Part shown: piece by piece, positions 3,574 through 41,628 of the stretch
Numbering within the stretch: position 1 is the stretch's first letter
Layout of the letters: each line of letters opens with the position of its first letter
NCBI RefSeq assembly: GCF_011386835.1
Contig: NC_088796.1
Coordinates: 84,506,001-84,570,000, forward strand
DNA: 64,000 nt
Source of the DNA: Chrysemys picta bellii
Taxonomy: Eukaryota
Direction of reading: 5' to 3'
Notes under the pieces: generated by a model
What the model was told of the DNA's origin: nothing
Database searches by the model: none
What the model saw: only the letters and a program-made list of their open reading frames with translations
Translations under genes and position numbers: made by a program

Positions 3574-5693
3574 GCCCTGGTCTACACTACGAGTTTAGGT
3601 CAAATTTAGCAGCATTAGATCGATTTAACCCTGCACCCGTCCACACAACAAAGCCATTTTTGTCAACTTAAAGGGCTCTTAAAATCGATTTCTGTATTCC
3701 TCCCCGACGAGGGGATTAGCACTGAAATCGATCCTGCTGGGTCGAATTTGGGGTAGTGTGGATGTAATTCGACAGTATTGGCCTCCCAGAGCTAACTCAG
3801 AGTGCTCCATTTTGACCACTCTGGACAGCACTCTCAACTCAGATGCACTGGCCAGGTAGACAGGAAAAGCCCCAGGAACTTTTGAATTTCATTTCCTGTT
3901 TGGCCAGCATAGCGAGCTGATCAGCACAGGTGACCATGGAGTCCCAGAATTGCAAAAGAGCTCCAGCATGGACTGAACAGGAGGTACTGCATCTGATCGC
4001 TGTATGAGGAGACAAATCTGTGCTATCCGAACTCCGTTCCAAAAGAAGAAATGCCGGAATATTTGAAAAAAATCTCCAAGGGCATGAAGGACAGAGGTTA
4101 TAACAGGGACCCGCAGTAGTGCAGCGTGAAGCCTACCAAAGAACCAGAGAGGCAAACGGCCGCTCTGGGTCAGAGCCCCAGACATGCCACTTCTATGATG
4201 AGCTGCATGCCATTCTAGGGGGTTCCCCTATAACTACCCTACCCCTGTGCTTCCCTCCTCCCCCACCCTTCCCGGGCTACCTTGGCAGTTATCCCCCCAT
4301 TTGTGTGATGAATTAATAAAGAATGCATGAATTTGAAACAACAATGACTTTATTGCCTCTGCAAGCGGAGATCAAAGAGGGGAGGGAGGGCAGTTGCCTT
4401 ACAGGGAAGTAGAGTGAACCAAGGGGGTGGGTTTTCATCAAGGAGAAACAAACAGAACTTTCACACCGTAGCCTGGCCAGTCATGAAACTGGTTTTCAAA
4501 GCTTCTCTGATGCGCAGCATGCCCTGCTGTGCTCTTCTAACCACCCTGGTGTCTGGCTGTGCGTAATCAGTGGCCAGGCGATTTGCCTCAACCTCCCACC
4601 CTGCCATAAATGTCTCCCCCTTACTCTCACAGATATTGTGGAGCGCACAGCAAGCAGAAATAACGATGGGAATATTGGTTTCGCTGAGGTCTAACCAAGT
4701 CAGTAAACTGCGCCAGTGAGCTTTTAAATGTCCAAAGGCACATTCTAACACCATCCTTCACTTGCTCAGCCTATAGTTGAACTGCTCCTTACTACTGTCC
4801 AGGCTTCATGAGCCATGGGAGCAAGGGATAGGCTGGGGTAGGTGCAACCGCGCAGTACTGCTGACTGGGAGAGCAGCCTGAGGCAGAAGCCTCCAGCTGG
4901 CATGATATTCCAGGCAGAACTGAATCTCTATTAGATGAAACTTAAAGAAGAGAATGACCTGGAGTCATTCCCATTTTTGTCCAGGCGCTCCCGACCAACC
5001 TAACCGAGGTCAGCCAGGAGCACCCACGGGACGATGACGAGGGCTAGCAGTCGTATTGCACCATCTGCCGTCCGCAAAACAAGGCAAGGCAAGGCAAGGC
5101 AAGGCAAGGGGATGCTTCTGTGTAGCACTGCAGTACCGCATCTGCCAGCAGCATCCAGGAAACATACAGCTGAGCGGGCTCCATGCTTGCTGTGGTATGT
5201 CGTCTGCACAGGTAACCCAGGAAAAAAGGCGAGAAACGATTTTTTGCCGTTGCTTTCATGGAGGGAGGGAAGGAGGGGGGGCCTGACGACATGTACCCAG
5301 AACAACCCGCGACAATGTTTTTGCCCCGTCAGGCATTGGGAGCTCAACCCAGAATTCCAATGGGCAGCGGAGACTGCGGGAACTGTGGGATAGCTACCAC
5401 AGTGCAACACTCCGAAAGTCAACGCTAGCCTCAAGTATCAGAGGGGTAGCCGTGTTAGTCTGAATCTGTAAAAAGCAACAGAGGGTCCTGTGGCACCTTT
5501 AAGGCTAACAGAAGTATTGGGAGCATAAGCTTTTGTGGGTAAGAACCTCACTTCTTCAGATGCCTCGGTACTGTGGACGCACACTGCCGACTTAATGCGC
5601 TTAGTGGGGACACACACAATCGACAATATCAAATCAATTTCTAAAAAATCGACTTCTATTAAATTGACCTAATTTTGTAGTGTAGACATACCC
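3574..5693. mobile_element. PIF/Harbinger transposon deletion derivative
   Basis: TIR-like ends (..GTCTACACTAC / GTAGTGTAGACATACCC) with TAA TSD. Disrupted Myb/SANT-like ORF on + from ATG 3936 (MESQNCKRAPAWTEQEVLHLIAV, later FYDELHAILGG). DDE transposase C-terminus on - at 4461-4754 (ECAFGHLKAHW..ACCALHNICE). Confidence 0.92.
5433..5563 (-). mobile_element. Penelope-like element 3' terminal stub with decayed hammerhead motif, nested in the Harbinger
   Basis: Matches the terminus at 32217-32320 and 49658-49790. Minus strand 5563-5523 reads GCAT-CTGAAGA-A-stem-AAAAGCTT-ATGC (GAAA changed to AAAA). GCCTC occurs at both junctions. Confidence 0.8.
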
Positions 5694-26946: not shown

Positions 26947-27045
26947 TTTGATTTGTGAACTCTTTGGAGCAAGAGCTGTCCTTTCTGAATGTTTGGAAAA
27001 TGACCAGTATATAGTAGGCACTAATCTATCACAAATAAAGAATAA

Positions 27046-27341
27046 GGGCTAGTCTACACTGGCAACATTAAAGCGTTGCCATGGCAGCACTTTAACGTGC
27101 CTTGTGTGGTTGTAGCACAGCGCTGGAAGAGAGCTCTCCCGCAGCGCAGCGCTGAGTGCTCTAAATAAACCCCTTCCACGAGGGGTGTAGCTACCAGTGC
27201 TGGGAGCACAGTTCCCAGCGCTGGTGCACTGTCTACACTGGTGCTTTACAGCGCTGAAACTTGCTGCGCTCAGGGGGATGTTTTTTCACGCCCCTGAGTG
27301 AGAAAGTTGCAGCGCTGTAAAGTGCCAGTGTACACAAGCCC
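27046..27341. mobile_element. Harbinger MITE
   Basis: TIRs GGGCTAGTCTACACTGGCA / TGCCAGTGTACACAAGCCC; TAA TSD on both sides. Confidence 0.88.
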
Positions 27342-27836
27342 TAAGACATGAAAGGAGCACAAAACGGGAAGGAGGGACTTACAGACGCAGTGTGGTGTGG
27401 GTAGTGGTACTGTGGAGACTGGGTGCTGGGGACCAATGATGAGTCTCCTTCAGTTCTAGTCATAGAAGAATGGGCATTGGGCAAAGGAAAGACACAGATC
27501 AGTCTTAACTGCTTGCAAGATTTGTGGAGAAGGCAAATATTATAGATCAGGAGGTCAGTTCAGGCTTCCCACTAGCAGGCAACAGCTTAGATCTTCTCCC
27601 TTCAAGGAAAGCAAATGCCTTGACAGGCCTTACAGGACTAGAGGGAGGAAGCAGCTGAATACACTGTAAATAACTTGCTTTTCAAGGCAACCCTGCCTGT
27701 CAAGTTTCTCCCAAAATTTTAAGTCATCTCCATGCGGGATAAAACTAGGTAAAATAATCTGTTGCAACCAGGCTGGAGGAAAGAGATTCTGAGCACAACT
27801 TCATCATATATATGGGTGAGATTCTTGGATAGATTT

Positions 27837-27907
27837 AGTCTCTAAGGTGCCACAAGTACTCCTGTTCTTTTTGCGGATACAGACTAACACGGCTGCTACT
27901 CTGAAAC
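27837..27907 (+). mobile_element. 71-bp extreme 3' stub of a Penelope-like element (family A)
   Basis: Reverse complement of the terminus seen at 49658-49735; 13-bp TSD CTTGGATAGATTT at 27824-27836 and 27908-27920. Confidence 0.88.
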
Positions 27908-29047
27908 CTTGGATAGATTTGTGCCTGGATTGCCATAAAGCAAATGAATTTGTTGCTGCCTGCAGTACTGTTCTGAAAAGGATTGGATGTGGAGAGCCTT
28001 GATTAGCATCTCTAGGTTAGCAGAAAGAGCAGACCAAGGAAAGAAAATGCTGTGAATTACCAGGAATTAGGAACCAGGGAGAGAGCAGTAGGGTCAAGAT
28101 CTAGAGACACCCTACATTTTAAATGTCCAAAACCAGGCACCTAAACTCTAAGTGGTAGGTGAAAGCATCCTTTATAGAAAGCTATCAAAATGAAAGATTT
28201 AATCTAATAACAAATATGTAGATGCTGCTACATGACAGAGAGGAATCTGAATCCTACAAAACAGGAGAAGCAGGATAGAATGTTACAGGAAAAACAGACT
28301 ATTAATCTTTCAGAAGAACAGCAGGATGTCTTGGAATTTGGTAGCCAAGGGACATAACAGCTGGCTAAGTTATGTAGAGACATATTACAACGCCTGTGTA
28401 GATCTAACACTTTCCCACAGTGTAATTTGATGGTTACTACGTTTTCAGTCTTATCTCTTGCACACTTACAGTGGGGACAGATTCACTCCTTTGGGGATGG
28501 GGTACGGGTGCGAAACAGGTGCCCACATGTCATGGTGATAAAAACAAAAATAGAAAAGTTCATCCCTTACACCTGCAAAAGCAGCAACAATGGAGGGGGG
28601 ATTTGCTCTGGAAAGGTAGGCAGCAGTGCAACTGCTATCCTCAACAGTTCTTCTAGAGAAAAACAGCTTTAAATTACTGTTGGGGCAGTACAGGAGCTCC
28701 TCTGCAGGAAACTGCTTAGAAGAGACACTGAATCCTTGCAACTCTCAGCTGATCTGTCCCTGCTCTCTTCTATGGTGGCCATTTCCACTTTTGGGGCAAT
28801 GTTAGTTCCTGAAAGGTGCTGTGCCCCAGCTCCAAGTGGACTTCCTATTTCCAAGGGCCTGCAGCCTAGTGAATCTGGCCCAAGATGTTTGTGAACTTGC
28901 CCTTGTTTCCATTATTGAAAGTAAAAGAAATGATGCAGTCTCCATTTCTGATTTATTGCCAGATAAGATTTTTATAGCTGGGAAAATGAAGTGGGGGAGA
29001 GGGCAGCTCTGCAGGCTAATCCCCATTCCCTTTTTTATCCTGCAACT

Positions 29048-29498
29048 AGCCGTTTAAAAAAAGATTTGGTTGTTCCCCATGTAGGTACTTCCTAGACTGT
29101 AATCAAGTCACTTCTTAACCTTCTCTTTGTTAAACTAAATAGATTGAGCTCTTTGAGTCTATCATTATAAGACATGTTTTCTAATCCTTTAATAATTCCT
29201 GGGGCTCTCTTCTGAACCCTCTCTAATTTATCAACACCTGAGTTGTGCAAGTTGAGCCTAGTTAGCATCAAGAGATGTTTTAACTTTTGTGTCCCCATAC
29301 TTTGCTAATATGTAATTGCTGAAGAAATAAATTCCATCTATGAACATGCAGCCACTTTTTCACCATATCTTTTATAAATACAGAAACCCACCTGCTGTTG
29401 ATATCTGAACTGTTTGTTGTAAGCCTCCTTTTCTTGTTGGAAAGCAATTGTGGCCTGAACTAATTCAGCTTTCTCACTGTAAAGTAAATTGGGGGGAG
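29048..29498. repeat. 451-bp direct duplication, copy 1 (includes a CR1 C-terminal fragment and a coding exon)
   Basis: No differences found by eye versus 33319-33769 (offset 4271). Confidence 0.95.
29392..29476 (-). CDS. Kelch-repeat/coiled-coil protein, coiled-coil exon (85 nt, phase 2-0), probable original copy
   Basis: atttactttacag / gtgggt; (T)EKAELVQATIAFQQEKEAYNKQFRYQQQ; upstream intron keeps a long pyrimidine tract and a TACTAAAC branch-like site. Confidence 0.85.
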
Positions 29499-30046
29499 GG
29501 GAAAATATGTTTAGTAAAAACAAACAAGTCATGAAATTACCAAAAAGGCCTGTTTTCGAAGGATGTTGGTGGCTTCAGTTATTTTAAAAACACAATACGC
29601 CATTTTAAATATAGATTTTAAATGTAAATGGAATTATTTGATCAGGTCTGTGCTGGAATACCAGGTGTTAGAGGTCTGTGGTTTAGGAGGGCACACTTCT
29701 AGAGCAGCCCCTAAACATGCCTAGTTTCCACACAAATTTCCAAGTGGAAATCTGCCCGGGAATTAATGTTGCTCCAAACTTCCTTCCTTCACTCCTTTTA
29801 TCCCCTGGGTGGAGGTATGTGGGGAGACTACAGACGCTGAGGAGGAGAAGCAATAGCAAAAAGAACAGCTCCTTAAGGAATCATACTGCACAGAGTTGAG
29901 GATCCAGGATACTCCAGGGAGGGTCTAGTTTTCCATGCTACAACACAGGATCCAAGGATCGCAGCCTGTTTTCCCTGAGGAACCCTAAGTGAGGCCTCAG
30001 TAGGCCTCATTCAATTGTTGGGTTAGAGACCCCTTTCCCTTGAGGC

Positions 30047-30170
30047 TAGGGTGACCAGATGTCCTGATTTTATAGAGACAGTCCTGATTTTGGGGTCTTT
30101 TTCTTATATAGGCTCCTATTACCCCCCCACCCTCATCCCGATTTTTCACATTTGCTGTCTGGTCACCCTA
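30047..30170. mobile_element. hAT-type MITE (TAGGGTGACCAG family)
   Basis: TIRs TAGGGTGACCAGA / TCTGGTCACCCTA; perfect 8-bp TSD CTTGAGGC. Confidence 0.92.
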
Positions 30171-30458
30171 CTTGAGGCAAAAAGAGAAAGGACATGCCAC
30201 AATGTGAACATGGTGGAGTTTCTAGCAGGATAAGTTTCAAAAATGTGAATTTAGGCATTTTTCCCAGGTCTCATGGCAATATTCTCATGCAGCCTTGTTG
30301 ATGAAGGCCCCAATTCTGCATGTGCTTAACTTTACTACTCTGAATTGCCCTTTATCTTCAGTAGGGCTACTCACGGTACAGTTAAATTAAGCACATGCAT
30401 AAATGTTTTCAGGATTAGGATCTAAAGCCTCAGTTCCGCAATGAACTCTATGCAGGTG

Positions 30459-31368
30459 TGTAGCGAGGCGATGTGGTCCCCCACCGTCTCAGAGAGGGAC
30501 GAGCCCCTCTGGACACCAAAGTGGGCAGAGCCAGTGAGTCCTGCACCCGCCCCCCCAGAGGTCAAAGCGCAGGACAGGAAGTATAAAAGCCCAACCCCAG
30601 AGCTCACTGGAGAAGCAGCCACTGGAGAGGCCAGATGACTGTGACCTAGCTCCCAGTTGGGAGACCCTGGCAACCGGTGGCAGACCCGAAGACTGGCCTG
30701 CCCAACCAATGCCTGACGCTGACCAGAGCCCGGAGGAGCTGCCAAGCCTACCCCTTGCCAGTTACCCTGAAAAACCCATGGTACTTGAACCCCCGGAGGA
30801 CACCGTCCAGACCCAGGTACCTCTAGAGGGAGAGTTAGGAAGTGGCCCTGGGGCAGCCAACTGTAGTCTAGCTGCAGCACTGCCAGAGCCTATGTCAGTG
30901 TGTTGCGGCCAGGATCCCCACTGACACAGCAGCGGGTCCTCTGCCGCTGCTAAGGCCCTGGGCTGGGACGCAGTGGAATGGGAGGGCCATTCTGGGTGGC
31001 AGTCTCCCCTTCTCCCAGGCCCCTCCGAGCCGAGAGCCTGGGCTGGTTGTTTACCTGCCTTTGCTCAGCCCGTGTCTGAGGGCCTGAGCCACTGACTCTC
31101 TGTGGCCCTGCCCCGACCCAAGGCCGGGGCCTGCTAATTATATAAACAGTTGCTCAGCTCCTGCCTGAGGACCTGAGCCCTGGACTCACTATTGCCGCCG
31201 ACCACGGGCCGGGCACGAATAACTGTCTGTGTTCGCCTCTACTGCTGCCACGGCGAGAGACTCCCACGGCCAGGCTAATTCCCCATCAACAACTGGAAGG
31301 AAGTACCGAAGCAGTGTGGTCCCCCGCCGCCCCAGAGAGGAACGAGCCCCGGCCAAACCCCTCATACA
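30459..31368 (+). mobile_element. Solo LTR (Gypsy-like, 910 bp)
   Basis: TGTA...TACA termini; 5-bp TSD AGGTG at 30454-30458 and 31369-31373; TATAAAA box near 30582. Confidence 0.85.
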
Positions 31369-32273
31369 AGGTGGCTCCTCATTAAAATCAGTGAAGCTCC
31401 TCAAACGGGCAAGGATCCATCCACAAAGTCAATTGCAGGATCAAAGCCAGAGGCTTGAACTATAGCAGTCTCTTATAGGTGCTGTGATAGTTACAAATAC
31501 ATCTATATTGTTGATTAAAGTAGAATCTATGCTTTTGCTTGAACTCCCTACAAAACAAAGCAAAATATAAAATAATAATTATATTTTTAATGGTCTCGTT
31601 TGTGTGCGGTAACAAAGTAAGTGTACACACAGCCTATCTAAACTCTTGACATATAGTGAGAAAGATTTAAATTTTTGCAAGAAGAGAGTAATCTTTATGT
31701 ATTTCTAACTATCTGATGAAAGCTTACTATCATAGTTCTGAGAAACTCTGCATTCCAAAATGGAGGCTCTTAATTCCAAAATGAACCAAGAAAACTCTCT
31801 CTCTCAGTTCCAATGCTTTTTCTGTCCTAATTTCTATTTTTCCTAAAAAGATTTTTGAGAATATTAAAATCATTATGAAGTGTAAGCCAATTTTAATGGT
31901 ACAGCATTTTTAAAAACAGATTTGTAGTTTTTAAACATATTTTTAAAGTTACTTTTAACAATATTTTTATTTCTTTCTGTGGCCTTGTTTAGAAAATGGG
32001 ATGTTTAAGATAGCTTTTCTGTAACAATAAATATATAATAGAATCTTGTAAGGGATATATAGAACAGATATCCCTTGAATGATCAATACTTTCTGATTCC
32101 TTCTGGCCCTCAGAAATTAAAAAAAGCTATCCACCTCTGTTTATCACAAAATAGAATCCACCTAAGAAGTAAAGACACTAAGAAAATGGTTCACATCATT
32201 TGAGACACTTTATCTAAGCAAAAAGAAGAACAGGAGGACTTGTGGCACCTTAGAGACTAACAAATTTATTAGA

Positions 32274-32313
32274 GCATAAGCTTTCGTGGACTACAGCCCA
32301 CTTCTTCGGATGC
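32274..32313 (-). ncRNA. Minimal type-I hammerhead ribozyme-like motif in the Penelope terminus
   Basis: GCAT-CCGAAGA-A-GTGGGC(TGTA)GTCCAC-GAA-AGCT-T-ATGC: helix I GCAT/ATGC, 6-bp helix II, palindromic helix III AGCT. U4 is C in this copy. Confidence 0.7.
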
Positions 32314-32508
32314 ATATAGAATGGAACATATATTGAGGAGATATATATACACACATACAGAGAGCATAAACAGGTGGGAGTTGTCTTACCACCTCTGAGA
32401 GGCCAATTAATTAAGAGAAAAAAAACTTTTGAAGTGATAATCAAGCTAGCCTAGTACAGACAGACAGTTAGATAACAAGTGTGAGAATACTAACAAGGGG
32501 AGACAGAT

Positions 32509-33294
32509 TCAATGTCTGTAATGGCTCAGCCATTCCCAGTCCTTATTCAAACCGGAGTTGATTGTGTCTAGTTTGCATATCAATTCTAGCTCAGCAGTTT
32601 CTCGTTGGAGTCTGTTTTTGAAGTTTTTCTGTTGTAATATAGCCACCCGCAGGTCTGTCACTGAATGACCAGACAGGTTAAAGTGTTCTCCCACTGGTTT
32701 TTGAGTATTTTGATTCCTGATGTCAGATTTGTGTCCATTAATTCTTTTGCGTAGAGACTGTCCGGTTTGGCCAATGTACATGGCAGAGGGGCATTGCTGG
32801 CACATGATGGCATATATCACATTGGTAGATGTGCAGGTGAACGAGCCCCTGATGGTATGGCTGATGTGATTAGGTCCTATGATGATGTCACTGGAATAGA
32901 TATGTGGACAGAGTTGACATCGGGGTTTGTTACAAGGATAGGTTCCTGGGTTAGTGGTTTTGTTCAGTGATGTGTGGTTGCTGGTGAGTATTTGCTTTAG
33001 GTTGGGGGGTTGTCTGTAAGCGAGGACAGGTCTGTCTCCCAAGATCTGTGAGAGTAAGGGATCATCTTTCAGGATAGGTTGTAGATCTCTGATGATGCGC
33101 TGGAGAGGTTTTAGTTGGGGGCTGAAGGTGACAGCTAGTGGTGTTCTGTTATTTTCTTTGTTGGGCCTGTCTTGTAGGAGGTGACTTCTGGGTACTCGTC
33201 TGGCTCTGTCAATCTGTTTTTTCACTTCAGCAGGTGGGTATTGTAGTTTTAAGAATGCTTGATAGAGATCTTGTAGGTGCTTGTCTCTATCCCC
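32509..33294 (-). CDS. Penelope ORF C-terminus: RT thumb, CxxxxCxxC linker, GIY-YIG endonuclease (5'-truncated)
   Basis: PCNKPRCQLC..NVIYAIMCQQCPSAMYIGQTGQSLRKRINGH..E..GLN; no stops or frameshifts. Confidence 0.9.
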   Translation of the reverse strand, partial: GDRDKHLQDLYQAFLKLQYPPAEVKKQIDRARRVPRSHLLQDRPNKENNRTPLAVTFSPQLKPLQRIIRDLQPILKDDPLLSQILGDRPVLAYRQPPNLKQILTSNHTSLNKTTNPGTYPCNKPRCQLCPHIYSSDIIIGPNHISHTIRGSFTCTSTNVIYAIMCQQCPSAMYIGQTGQSLRKRINGHKSDIRNQNTQKPVGEHFNLSGHSVTDLRVAILQQKNFKNRLQRETAELELICKLDTINSGLNKDWEWLSHYRH

Positions 33295-33318
33295 TCCCTT
33301 GTCTCTATCCCTATCCCA

Positions 33319-33769
33319 AGCCGTTTAAAAAAAGATTTGGTTGTTCCCCATGTAGGTACTTCCTAGACTGTAATCAAGTCACTTCTTAACCTTCTCTTTG
33401 TTAAACTAAATAGATTGAGCTCTTTGAGTCTATCATTATAAGACATGTTTTCTAATCCTTTAATAATTCCTGGGGCTCTCTTCTGAACCCTCTCTAATTT
33501 ATCAACACCTGAGTTGTGCAAGTTGAGCCTAGTTAGCATCAAGAGATGTTTTAACTTTTGTGTCCCCATACTTTGCTAATATGTAATTGCTGAAGAAATA
33601 AATTCCATCTATGAACATGCAGCCACTTTTTCACCATATCTTTTATAAATACAGAAACCCACCTGCTGTTGATATCTGAACTGTTTGTTGTAAGCCTCCT
33701 TTTCTTGTTGGAAAGCAATTGTGGCCTGAACTAATTCAGCTTTCTCACTGTAAAGTAAATTGGGGGGAG
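33319..33769. repeat. 451-bp direct duplication, copy 2, fused to the Penelope 5' junction
   Basis: Apparently identical to 29048-29498; the right end joins a CR1 fragment. Confidence 0.95.
33663..33747 (-). CDS. Duplicate of the 85-nt coiled-coil exon (usage unknown)
   Basis: Identical exon and splice sites to 29392-29476, but only about 20 nt of native upstream intron retained. Confidence 0.5.
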
Positions 33770-34620
33770 TTCTTTTAAAACTCTTGGATGCAATTTCTCT
33801 GGACCTGCTGATTTTAAAATGTCTGACTTTGGAGGCTTCTCTTTAACATCCTCTAGAGATACTAGTGGGATGGAAAGAGTGTTAGGACCATATAATGAGA
33901 CTGCATCATCTTTTTTTCCTTCAAATACAGAACAAAAATACTTATTGAACACTTTTTCTTTTTTTGCTTTTTATGCATTATTATTGACAGTTCTTTCATT
34001 TCTAGCTAATAATGAACCAATACCATTGTCAGAATTCTTTTTGTTCCTAATATATTTTTAAAACTCCTTATTGTCCTTGTCTGTTGACCATACATTTCTC
34101 CTTGTGTCCCTTGGCTTTCCTTATCAATTTTCTACAATTCCTAACTTCTGACTATCAACTCCCCCTTTCTTCCATTCATTATATATTATTATTTTATTAT
34201 TTTTATAGCTGCCTTCACTTCCCTTCTAAACCAGTTTTTTTTTTTTAATCCGCACAGCCTTCTTCCTCAGTTGTGGGATTGTGGCTTTTTGGGCATCTAG
34301 TAAGGCATTCTTAAAGGATGAACATTATCATGCACATTTTTCTGATTAAATTCTTTCTACCAGCTGAGTCAGCTTAGCCCTATTAAAGCACCATATATAA
34401 AGTCCAGATTCTGTTTGCAGAATTATAAATATGATCAATTCATGGTCACTTTTACACTAAGCTACCAATAACTTTTAGTTCTGTAGTCTTTTCCTCTTTA
34501 CGTTAGGACAAGGCCTAATATAGAATTCCCCCCATGTCGGCTGTAACACTTTTTGAGTTAGGAAACTGTCAGCTATAATGTTTAGAAATTCCAAGGATTA
34601 CTTAAAAGGGGTGGGGAGAA
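33770..34620 (-). mobile_element. Old CR1 ORF2 fragments
   Basis: FNKYFCSVF..KSAGPEKLHPRVLKEL are typical CR1 linker/RT-proximal motifs. Confidence 0.75.
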
Positions 34621-36414
34621 GGAGAAGGGATCCCAATTAATAGTAGGGGCTAATAATGAAGAACAATCCTTGAAATGAATCAAGCTTAAAAAGCCTCCGA
34701 TAAGAAATGGATTAAAAACATTTGTTATATACCGGTGCCATCTACTGGATACCGATGAAAGCATCAGAGAAAATAAGAGCTGAAATCTAAGCACTTACTT
34801 GGCATGTATCAGGAATTCGAGGGTGATCCCTTCCAATTAGTCCTGAAACTAGGGTATATAAACTGAGGTCACCATGTGCTCAAGAGAGTTGACTGAATCC
34901 AACAAGAAGCTTCGGAATCCTAAAAGTGTGACCTAGGTCCAGACCAGACCAGCCTTGTGGAAATGACCCTCCCCATCCCAGGGCTAAAGGGATAAAAAGT
35001 GGTGAGGGGATTTCAATTCAGAGATTGTATTACTCCTATTTCTTTAACATAAAGAACTGTATATTATTTTGCTGAGCCCACACTGTCTAATGGTTTCTCT
35101 CAAGCAACCATATTTTTAATTTTAATTCCTCTATAAACCAAGTGAGACTGAAAACAATAACTTTAAGCAATTGCTTTTAATATTCTAAACTTGTCCTTTT
35201 TGGACCAATCCATTTGTACCATACTACCCACACTCTTCAAAGTGCCTTAAAGACAAGTGTATCCTTGGAAGTGTGATAAATGTGTTGGTACTAAATAACT
35301 GATAAGTAAATGTAGTAAGAAATCTTGGTAATTTGCACTGTTCCTCAAAATAACTGCTGAGCCTCAACTCTACTCTGTAATAATTTTTTTGCAAGACTGT
35401 ATTGTGTGTGTAGTACACACCTAGAATATTGGTTGTGTCTACATTTGAATGGTGAACTGTTGATTGTATACTAATGAGGTTCTGGGTGAATAAATACATT
35501 GTTGGTTGGCTAAGAATAAGCAAGTGTGAAGTGTCCTGATTTAAGGAATACTGTTCAAGTTAAAAATTGACCTGGAAAGAACCCAGCATTAAAACTGGTA
35601 AGCTAACACTCCCTGGATTCAATAAAAATAACTTACCCAACTGGCAAACCTAGTTTGTTAGATTTCAGCTTTAAAATCTAATTGGCACCCTGGCAAATTC
35701 ATAAAAAAATTACCTCTTTTCATGCTTACAATCTAGACATGTCAGAGAAAATAGACAGAAAAGATCTAATTGTTACATTATCTCTAGTCCAGCTCCTTGT
35801 TTGTGCGGGATTGCTTCCTATTGTCCACTCTAAAAATTATATTAAATGTGCCAAACAAACAACTTTTCCCGCCACTTAAGTTGTGTTTATACTAGAATAT
35901 TTTTGCTAAAATGTCCCCACTGTTTCAGCTCCACTGTGTAGCCCATAGAGCTATCCTGGCCTTTATACTAAGTTGTAATGCAAGAAACCTACAGGCCTGT
36001 ATACAGTAAAATATTAGCTTAGGCAGGTTAATTTAAGTATAATCAAATATAGTAGTCCTGTGACCCTTGGCATAGATAAATGGCCTGATAGTTACCCTTA
36101 GATTTTGGGGAATTAGGAATAGCTTGCTCAATAGCAGAAGTTGAAACCTAATGATAGCCGGTAACCGTAGGGACATAAAAGTGATACTGAGCTGGGATAT
36201 TTTAGGATACAATCATTGGCAGATATCTAAACACAAATTTGCTTGAGCAAGAGGTGATGTATAAAATAATGAGTCAAAATGGTATGAATATGTATTAATA
36301 TGTTAACCTATAGGATAAGTGCACCCCAACAGTTTGAGGGTGAGGAAATTAGATTTGGACATGGAAGGCTGAGCATTAGAATGAATATTCATGCTAGTGT
36401 TCAGGCCCTATCAT

Positions 36415-41015: not shown

Positions 41016-41018
41016 ATG

Positions 41019-41141
41019 TAGGGTGACCAGACAGCAAATGTGAAAAATAGGGACGGGGGTGGGGGGTAATAGGAGCCTATATAAGAAAAAGACCCAAAAA
41101 TCGGGACTGTCCCTATAAAATCAGGACATCTGGTCACCCTA
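41019..41141. mobile_element. hAT-type MITE (TAGGGTGACCAG family)
   Basis: TIRs TAGGGTGACCAGA / TCTGGTCACCCTA. Confidence 0.88.
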
Positions 41142-41527: not shown

Positions 41528-41628
41528 GTGTCTAGCTTTTGAAACTCCAAGTCCAGCAAGGCAAAGGCCCTTGTGATCATGTCCATTGCTTGGTTACGTA
41601 CAGAAATGAAATCTCTGAGTTGAGCTGC
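41528..41628 (-). CDS. Kelch-repeat/coiled-coil protein exon (101 nt, phase 0-2)
   Basis: ttttctacatag / gtatgt; AAQLRDFISVRNQAMDMITRAFALLDLEFQKLD(T); phase fits the 85-nt exon. Confidence 0.88.

Follow-up and report, generated by a model that had tools for sequence, protein, structure and literature searches.

How does an intron come to hold a second, letter-perfect copy of a coding exon of its own gene, and what part did the retroelement lying beside that copy play? The question is raised by a 64-kb stretch of the Chrysemys picta bellii reference genome (contig NC_088796.1, positions 84,506,001 to 84,570,000), called the window here and used for all coordinates below unless another locus is named. 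In it, a gene for a Kelch-repeat protein, read from the minus strand, has a young Penelope-like element (PLE) in the intron before its third from last coding exon, and that exon, with parts of the introns on both sides, recurs near the 5' end of the element. The arrangement is a replacement of native intron sequence, found so far in the reference assembly and in none of the other turtles compared, and its structure rather favors a single complex event of PLE retrotransposition and repair as its origin.

Two identical segments in one intron

The repeated segment, A, is found at 29048-29498 (A1) and at 33319-33769 (A2), with an offset of 4,271 bp between the two. Compared within the window, the copies match over 451 bp with 0 mismatches, and the match extends neither way. 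An earlier note on this DNA, made from the sequence alone, had drawn attention to this identity; the match is indeed exact, and in a search of the turtle's own 2.37-Gb genome the full 451-bp segment occurs at these two places only. Positions 23-189 of A, taken alone, have further copies in the genome at 87-90% identity. They correspond to a C-terminal fragment of the second open reading frame (ORF2) of a CR1 element, which in A1 lies at 29070-29236, within the 344 nt of downstream intron that together with the 85-nt exon and 22 nt of upstream intron make up the segment. A self-comparison of the window (matches of at least 90% identity) found A1 and A2 to be its sole 100% identical internal repeat, and the 64 kb contain no Ns. 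Of the two copies, A1 is supported as the original because the sequence on either side of it is also found in contigs of three further individuals and at the orthologous loci of two more turtles, as described next.

The locus in other turtles and other individuals

Orthologous loci were obtained by exact-product look-ups from Pangshura tecta (L047, ~90% identical) and Malaclemys terrapin (L048, 98.2% identical, reached via the longest isoform, P0207). Both are collinear with the minus strand of the window, and each has a single copy of A, in the context of A1: in Malaclemys at L048 69618-70068, with 1 mismatch in 451 bp, and in Pangshura at L047 21737-22178. Neither the young PLE nor A2 is present in either of these loci. 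The earlier note had tied the duplication to the insertion of the element, and the relatives agree with it to the extent that both turtles without the PLE are also without a second A, whereas a duplication in relatives lacking the insertion would have spoken against the note. The single base by which A1 differs from Malaclemys is present in A2 as well, which is what a copy made in this lineage should show.

When the Malaclemys locus is aligned with the window, the upstream part of the alignment reaches window position 33768 and the downstream part begins at 32220. Between them, 3,979 bp of the Malaclemys sequence (L048 62693-66671) are missing from the window, and window positions 32221-33767 stand in their place. 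The reference allele is a replacement, with about 4 kb taken out and 1,547-1,549 bp (PLE, filler and A2) put in, and the event was not a simple insertion. In Malaclemys the deleted segment holds the 3' 1.1-1.4 kb of the CR1 element whose remaining part adjoins A2 in the window, an old Penelope relic and unique sequence. The relic (L048:64234-66104, L047:16253-17945) is ~84% identical to the young family and matches young copies in both directions, as a fold-back. Pangshura has ~4.5 kb at the deleted place, with part of the relic inverted relative to Malaclemys. The long inverted repeat formed by the relic at the site of the deletion could have made it a fragile site.

Contigs (Logan) of three DNA sequencing runs were also compared over 28700-34400. 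The first, X2, has the organism label of the best-matching run, from another sample and study, and shows 0 differences over ~2.9 kb; X3 has a second organism label and is ~0.2% different, and X11, with a fourth label, is ~1.3% different. In all three, one contig runs across the 29047|29048 border of A1 (28700-29122/29131) and one across the 29498|29499 border (29169-30070/30074). The contig with the unique part of A has a depth of 21.9 in X2, 20.4 in X3 and 43.3 in X11, compared with 21.7-25.8, 18.4-24.9 and 29-50.9, respectively, for neighboring single-copy contigs. A further contig, covering 31276-32220, departs from the reference at 32220, the same breakpoint that is given by the Malaclemys comparison, and continues for 64 (X2), 64 (X3) and 205 nt (X11) that match nothing in the window. 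With A at single-copy depth and with this departure at 32220, X2, X3 and X11 are therefore without the PLE and without A2. The two are jointly absent from these three individuals and from both other turtle genomes, as a single event predicts. Because the 451 bp are without differences, the PLE has ~100% identity to its family, and an animal with the same label lacks the allele, the duplication appears to be a within-species, newborn variant that is possibly private.

The Penelope-like element and its junctions

The PLE copy in the window is 1,072 bp long and has the same sense as the host gene; more than 40 other copies in the genome match it at 99.9-100% identity. An open frame at 32512-33324 (minus strand) has a match to a GIY-YIG endonuclease (Pfam PF01541, E = 3.4e-6, residues 169-218), while no reverse-transcriptase match was found in the window copy, which keeps ~270 codons and ends at 33292, where other copies continue upstream. 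It is 5'-truncated at this position because nine other copies run on there with family sequence, reading ...CAATCCCTC|GGATAGAGACAAG in common at the point where the window copy ends. An endonuclease of this kind, in a dispersed multi-copy family with frequent head-to-head copies, is what is found in Penelope-like elements, and the family is young and currently active. The earlier note's description of a young, 5'-truncated element in sense to the gene is upheld by the near-identical copies and by the comparison of their ends.

At least 13 of 18 other young loci of this family (L029-L046) are head-to-head inverted pairs in which both outer ends are 3' ends of the element; fold-back arms among the 18 sampled loci range from 171 to 1,664 bp. 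As a solitary copy without a fold-back, the one in the window has the unusual form. Its 3' end (...TTCTTCTTTTTGC) is of a "short" type seen in four of nine other copies as well, while another four of the nine extend ~35 nt more. The 3' ends of the family thus come in two kinds, one at ...TTCTTCTTTTT plus 0-2 nt and the other ~35 nt beyond, at ...CTACTCTGAAACC (window 32221-32260 and L010-L018), which suggests that priming or termination on the Penelope RNA has two preferred sites. An Rfam scan of 27000-35000 gave no hammerhead ribozyme match at E <= 0.1, although minimal hammerheads may escape such a scan. At 27835-27872, 4.3 kb off, there are 38 nt in opposite orientation that are 95% complementary to the Penelope 3' terminal region (32223-32260); this fragment looks like an older, separate remnant of a Penelope tail.

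The earlier note had placed A2 directly at the 5' end of the PLE. This did not hold, as 26 nt of filler intervene (33293-33318). In sense orientation the filler reads TGGGATAG-GGATAGAGACAAG-GGAGG, in which 13 nt (GGATAGAGACAAG) and 6-7 nt (GGATAG) are repeats of the sequence at the adjacent, truncated end of the PLE. At the left breakpoint, Malaclemys has ...GGGTGC|TTAGATAAAG where the window has ...TTTTTGC|TTAGATAAAG, and at the right one Malaclemys has ...AAAAGAACT|GGCTGAGG where the window has ...AAAAGAACT|CCCCCC, the corresponding context of A1 being ...TTTTCCC|CTCCCCCC. Two nucleotides of microhomology are found at each (Table 1). No target-site duplication accompanies the insertion; there is a deletion instead. 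The left flank, TTAGATAAAG, is AT-rich, and AT-rich flanks have been reported for Penelope targets (PMC3846280), but such a flank is no proof that the endonuclease of the element itself made the break. On the far side of A2, the old CR1 breaks off in the middle of ORF2 (...HPRVLKEL), and its missing 3' part was not found elsewhere in the 64-kb window.

Two other readings of these borders were tried and set aside. Position 33770 is not a natural CR1 3' terminus: it lies in mid-ORF2, and other copies, as well as the orthologous CR1 in L047 and L048, continue beyond it. Nor is there a usable microhomology between the 3' flank of A1 and the end of the PLE, where there is only a GGATA, 7 nt off, that does not fit the junction. 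Short ORFs cross the A2/CR1 and the Penelope/filler/A2 junctions, and an exact-product look-up found neither of them on record.

Origin of the second copy

The locus combines the features by which complex insertions of retroelements are recognized: a family-typical 3' end with a 5' truncation, an empty site in relatives together with loss of target sequence, and an identical extra segment from nearby with microhomology at its junction. Taken together, they make it fairly probable that A2 arose in one complex event of Penelope retrotransposition and repair, with deletion of the target site and templated copying of nearby sequence. The habits of the family support one event, since new copies, as the 13 fold-backs among 18 loci show, are routinely joined at their 5' ends to another product of synthesis; in the window, host sequence takes that place.

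In such an event, the 3' end of the plus DNA strand at 32220 (...TAAGC-3') would anneal by its GC near the 3' end of the Penelope RNA and prime reverse transcription, in a manner like target-primed reverse transcription (TPRT). The polymerase would stall after ~1.07 kb, stutter, and re-copy 13 nt and then 6 nt. Synthesis would then move to an A-sequence template 2.7 kb away, or else the opposite DNA end would be extended on A; the template for A may have been either unspliced host pre-mRNA or DNA. After 451 nt, the product would be joined by the CT microhomology to a DNA end ~4 kb upstream, in the CR1, and the intervening DNA would be lost. Two variants can be envisaged. In one, the first-strand cDNA on the plus strand, growing from 32220, would continue on a sense A template (pre-mRNA or the minus DNA strand). 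In the other, the DNA end in the CR1 would be extended on the plus strand of A1 after CT annealing, and its end joining to the truncated cDNA would yield the stutter. A stop of the reverse transcriptase at a lariat branch point was considered as the origin of the 5' end of A2 and ruled out: A starts at -22, in the pyrimidine tract, and not at an adenine.

The earlier note had suggested that synthesis switched from Penelope RNA to the nascent host pre-mRNA or to DNA nearby. The one-event structure supports the more general part of this, that the local copying of the exon was linked to the PLE, while the choice between the two templates cannot be made from A, an unspliced intron-exon-intron segment that does not separate RNA from DNA. 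The more specific proposal, that the Penelope reverse transcriptase jumped from its own RNA to the nascent, unspliced host pre-mRNA and so copied the exon back into the same intron, can be entertained tentatively, at well below even chances. It is not far-fetched, because copying of intron-containing host sequence is known from PLEs, for which template jumps have also been proposed (PMC3846280).

Several points weigh against a single PLE-driven event. The derived allele is seen in the reference assembly alone, and X2, with the same label, 0 differences over ~2.9 kb and no such allele, would indicate an artefact if it is the assembled animal. Among the 18 other young Penelope loci (stretches of up to 10 kb, a small and one-sided screen), none has a local duplicate of non-Penelope sequence, so that the outcome is at any rate rare. 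With a deletion and no target-site duplication, an origin of the breaks by the endonuclease and TPRT is presumed rather than observed. Finally, one step and two steps cannot be told apart by sequence alone.

In a two-step history, an ordinary Penelope insertion at 32220, probably a fold-back, would have been followed by a later rearrangement that removed ~4 kb along with the 5' part of the PLE and was patched with a 451-bp copy of nearby DNA. The route would have been microhomology-mediated template switching or polymerase-theta end joining, with the PLE as a bystander. Microhomologies of 2 nt and a templated, stuttering filler are also a signature of template switching by DNA polymerases, the old fold-back relic in the deleted segment, with its long inverted repeat, could provoke breakage, and the inverted partner carried by 13 of 18 young copies is missing here. 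Such a history, however, calls for two rare occurrences at one spot within a very short time (0 differences in 451 bp, and ~100% family identity of the PLE). The intermediate allele was not seen, X2, X3 and X11 being wholly without the PLE, and the filler repeats the very end of the truncated element, as if truncation and junction had arisen together. Two separate events are unlikely.

A low probability is likewise given to an assembly artefact, in which the reference animal would have the ancestral arrangement and the block of PLE, filler and A2 would have been misassembled, for instance around the palindromic relic. The fold-back repeat in the ancestral segment is indeed hard to assemble, and none of the three other individuals has the allele, not even the one of the same label with 0 differences over ~2.9 kb. 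A family-typical 3' end, a base-exact breakpoint, a 5' truncation, filler and 2-nt microhomologies are nevertheless not what assemblers would be expected to produce; the window has no Ns and A1/A2 as the sole 100% internal repeat found; and a private insertion is to be expected from a family with dozens of ~100% identical copies. The slightly higher word share of X1 (0.86 vs 0.83), which with X5, X9 and the 2012 run X10 is among the runs of the probable source sample, is compatible with its having some 2% of junction-specific words and is no evidence. Conventional duplication, whether a long target-site duplication or 3' transduction around an insert of 3.8 kb or a tandem duplication through unequal crossing-over, is very improbable. 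The order A-B-A has a superficial likeness to a long target-site duplication, but the stretch 29499-32220 belongs to the native intron: it adjoins A1 without a break in three individuals and two other species and so was not inserted, which rules out the first two forms. A tandem duplication would not set A2 against mid-CR1 sequence with ~4 kb lost.

Host gene and predicted splicing

The gene model was built by searching the upstream exon against a protein library without a profile, which led to turtle proteins that were then placed on the window by tblastn. The resulting order is ...41625-41528 / [33747-33663] / 29476-29392 / 22666-22562 / 20375-20274, stop, with the gene as a whole spanning 20274-60665 on the minus strand. 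Its product, ~506 aa, has Kelch repeats (propeller) and a C-terminal coiled coil, and the gene is conserved from sharks and teleosts (zebrafish zmp:0000001301) to reptiles. Automatic names are inconsistent, with about a dozen contradictory ones across species (RABEPK-like, KLHDC3-like, actin-fragmin kinase-like and Tea1-like among them). The recorded sequence of the 506-aa product P0207 is identical in Malaclemys terrapin and C. picta bellii, and a C. picta bellii UniRef entry matches the window exons at 100%, including an intron read-through tail. Intron read-through ends several of the database models (P0002 from Caretta, P0041 from C. picta bellii and P0004 from Gopherus).

The twin exon in A2 (33747-33663, minus strand) is 85 nt long like the native one. 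Both begin with AG|TGAG and end with CAG|GTGGGT, the acceptor reading ...CTCCCCCCAATTTACTTTACAG|, and the 85 nt have a single open frame, frame 1 (EKAELVQATIAFQQEKEAYNKQFRYQQQ). The upstream exon leaves 2 nt of a codon at 41528; the duplicated exon opens with the T of this split codon, followed by GAG, and closes on a complete codon. Translation thus bears out what the earlier note had read from the sequence, a complete 85-nt exon of phase 2-0 with both splice sites in each copy. Its expectation of an immediate stop (CAG|TGA) on inclusion of both twins is met by the twin-to-twin junction, CAGCAG|TGAGAA, which has an in-frame TGA, and the two further exons that it expected downstream are those placed by tblastn at 22666-22562 and 20375-20274.

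In a probable RNA run (X26), a 1,277-nt contig matches 29391-29480 and nothing adjacent, with the exon present once. The exon is therefore spliced as predicted in that transcript. The transcript says nothing of a carrier; the DNA run with the same organism label (X3) is without the twin. For RNA, a search of sequencing runs with the region returned only metatranscriptome rows with small shares, and one with the exon alone returned probable transcriptome runs of other organism labels.

From 22 nt before the exon, in pyrimidine-rich intron, through acceptor, exon and donor to 344 nt into the downstream intron, the twins are the same; they differ upstream of -22. There A1 has TTTGTTTTTACTAAACATATTTTCCC, with a branch-site-like TACTAAA motif and 70% pyrimidine, and A2 has purine-rich CR1 coding sequence with 37% pyrimidine. 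Sequence comparison agrees here with the earlier note, according to which A2 had lost its native branch-point region and adjoins CR1 sequence. Because the TACTAAA-like branch region is lost, it is uncertain how often the upstream twin would be used. Inclusion of one twin is predicted to give the normal mRNA. If both were included, the TGA as first codon of the second twin would lead to nonsense-mediated decay or to a protein without its last 97 residues; if both were skipped, a frame shift is predicted. From the TGA it is 85 nt to the junction with exon 22666-22562, more than the 50-55 nt by which poison exons are recognized, and there is a further junction after that one.

In form, the twins are a tandem exon pair, with two homologous exons in one intron, both with splice sites and each of 85 nt, which is not divisible by 3. 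The duplicate is, however, not shared across individuals or species as an established pair would be, being absent in X2, X3, X11, Malaclemys and Pangshura. The "mutually exclusive or poison-exon pair" of the earlier note is a prediction only, of a possible future and not of a present function, and since the twins are identical there is no isoform diversity as yet. The allele would be at best neutral and is probably hypomorphic, with lower output of the Kelch/coiled-coil gene, which fits its absence from other animals. It is more likely to be transient and mildly deleterious than to mark the beginning of a new isoform.

Table 1. Features of the exon duplication and the host gene (window coordinates).
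Feature	Position	Strand	Evidence
A1, original segment	29048..29498	-	exact repeat; both flanks contiguous in X2, X3, X11; collinear single copy in L047, L048
A2, derived copy with twin exon 33663-33747	33319..33769	-	identity to A1; no counterpart at this position in L047/L048
Native 85-nt coding exon, phase 2 to 0, third from last	29392..29476	-	translation, splice sites, tblastn of turtle orthologues, X26 RNA contig
Young Penelope-like element, 5'-truncated, C-terminal part of ORF	32221..33292	-	copy identity, Pfam, 3'-end comparison
26-nt filler between A2 and Penelope 5' end	33293..33318	-	read from sequence; nine other copies continue with family sequence instead
Left breakpoint, native intron / Penelope 3' end, 2-nt GC microhomology	32220..32221	.	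Malaclemys comparison; X2, X3, X11 contigs
Right breakpoint, old CR1 / A2, 2-nt CT microhomology	33768..33770	.	Malaclemys comparison
Native intron between A1 and Penelope, 2.7 kb	29499..32220	-	unique apart from old repeats; contiguous with A1 in X2, X3, X11; collinear in L047, L048
Old CR1 fragment, 73-80% identical to other copies, 3' part lost in the event	33770..34598	-	copy comparison; orthologous CR1 continues >1.1 kb in L047, L048
Upstream coding exon (...LLDLEFQKLD, end AC|GTATGT)	41528..41625	-	translation and tblastn
Following downstream coding exon, 35 aa	22562..22666	-	tblastn
Final coding exon, 34 aa, then stop codon	20274..20375	-	tblastn

Other repeats in the window

The native intron between A1 and the PLE contains a ~910-bp repeat (30456-31368), 73-83% identical to many copies in the genome, with similar ~40-nt motifs at both ends (...tgtggtcccccRccg...cagagaggRacgagcccc). 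A short repeat of very high copy number occurs in the gene in opposite orientations at 30047-30171 and 41018-41141 (94% identity), with a word depth above 1e6 in all DNA runs. Outside the gene, an open frame at 4464-4757 (minus strand) resembles, by eye only, the C-terminus of a Harbinger/PIF-type DDE transposase (...ACCALHNICE...) and could belong to a transposon or a domesticated copy.

Comparison with known systems

The ingredients of the proposed event are each known singly: complex insertions of L1, template switching by reverse transcriptases, capture of intron-bearing host DNA by PLEs, and tandem exon duplication. For L1, retrotransposition accompanied by target-site deletion and by sequence templated nearby was reportedly described in 2002 by Gilbert et al. 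and by Symer et al., both in Cell. Three L1 insertions with templated local sequence have since been described (PMC11702581). The window shares with L1 complex insertions a 5'-truncated element with an intact 3' junction, microhomology, loss of target sequence, and a local segment at the 5' junction. It differs in that the element is a PLE (GIY-YIG, no poly-A), in that this is a natural, germline allele and not one from cell culture, and in that the local segment is 451 bp with a whole host exon.

Chimeric retrocopies formed by template switching of reverse transcriptase (U6/L1 and L1-mRNA; PMC4476161; bioRxiv 10.1101/2025.02.02.635956) are similar in that a truncated element is followed past its 5' end by another sequence in the same orientation, as a jump from RNA to RNA would give. 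The known partners are abundant small RNAs or distant spliced mRNAs, whereas the one in the window is unspliced and derives from the same intron, 2.7 kb off, so that DNA could equally have been the template. In Penelope-mediated gene copying in Adineta vaga (PMC3846280), a PLE is likewise linked to a host duplicate that retains introns, but there a whole gene lies between Penelope terminal repeats at a new locus, with an 8-bp target-site duplication. Here the copy is local and 451 bp long, without surrounding terminal repeats, and there is a deletion instead of a target-site duplication. Within the genome there is a likeness to the fold-backs of the same Penelope family: their 3' ends are of the same kind, and in them, too, a sense copy with a 5' truncation is joined by its 5' end to a second product of synthesis; that product is an inverted Penelope fragment in the fold-backs and a direct copy of host DNA here.

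With the tandem exon duplications that give rise to mutually exclusive exons (PMC9013439, PMC9741552), the twins share the homologous exon pair within one intron and an exon length that is not a multiple of 3, so that the frame is kept only if just one of the two is included. The tandem-duplicated pairs known so far are overwhelmingly diverged and "of ancient origin", more than 90% of them being shared with bony fish (PMC9741552), while the copies here are identical and the allele private. In the literature checked, no description was found of a templated local copy linked to a PLE and comprising a complete exon of the element's own host gene, in the pre-divergence state that the window appears to preserve.

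Tandem exon duplications underlie most conserved mutually exclusive pairs, and the mutational step that creates such pairs is rarely seen because almost every known case goes back hundreds of millions of years. Here the duplication step is caught at zero divergence and with base-exact breakpoints, and it points to repair associated with retrotransposition and not to unequal crossing-over. The class of complex insertions, documented in the sources checked for L1 in cultured and tumour cells, would thereby be extended to Penelope-like elements. If the jump to pre-mRNA did take place, it would amount to a retroelement-driven route to tandem exon duplication, one that could recur in genomes with active Penelope families.

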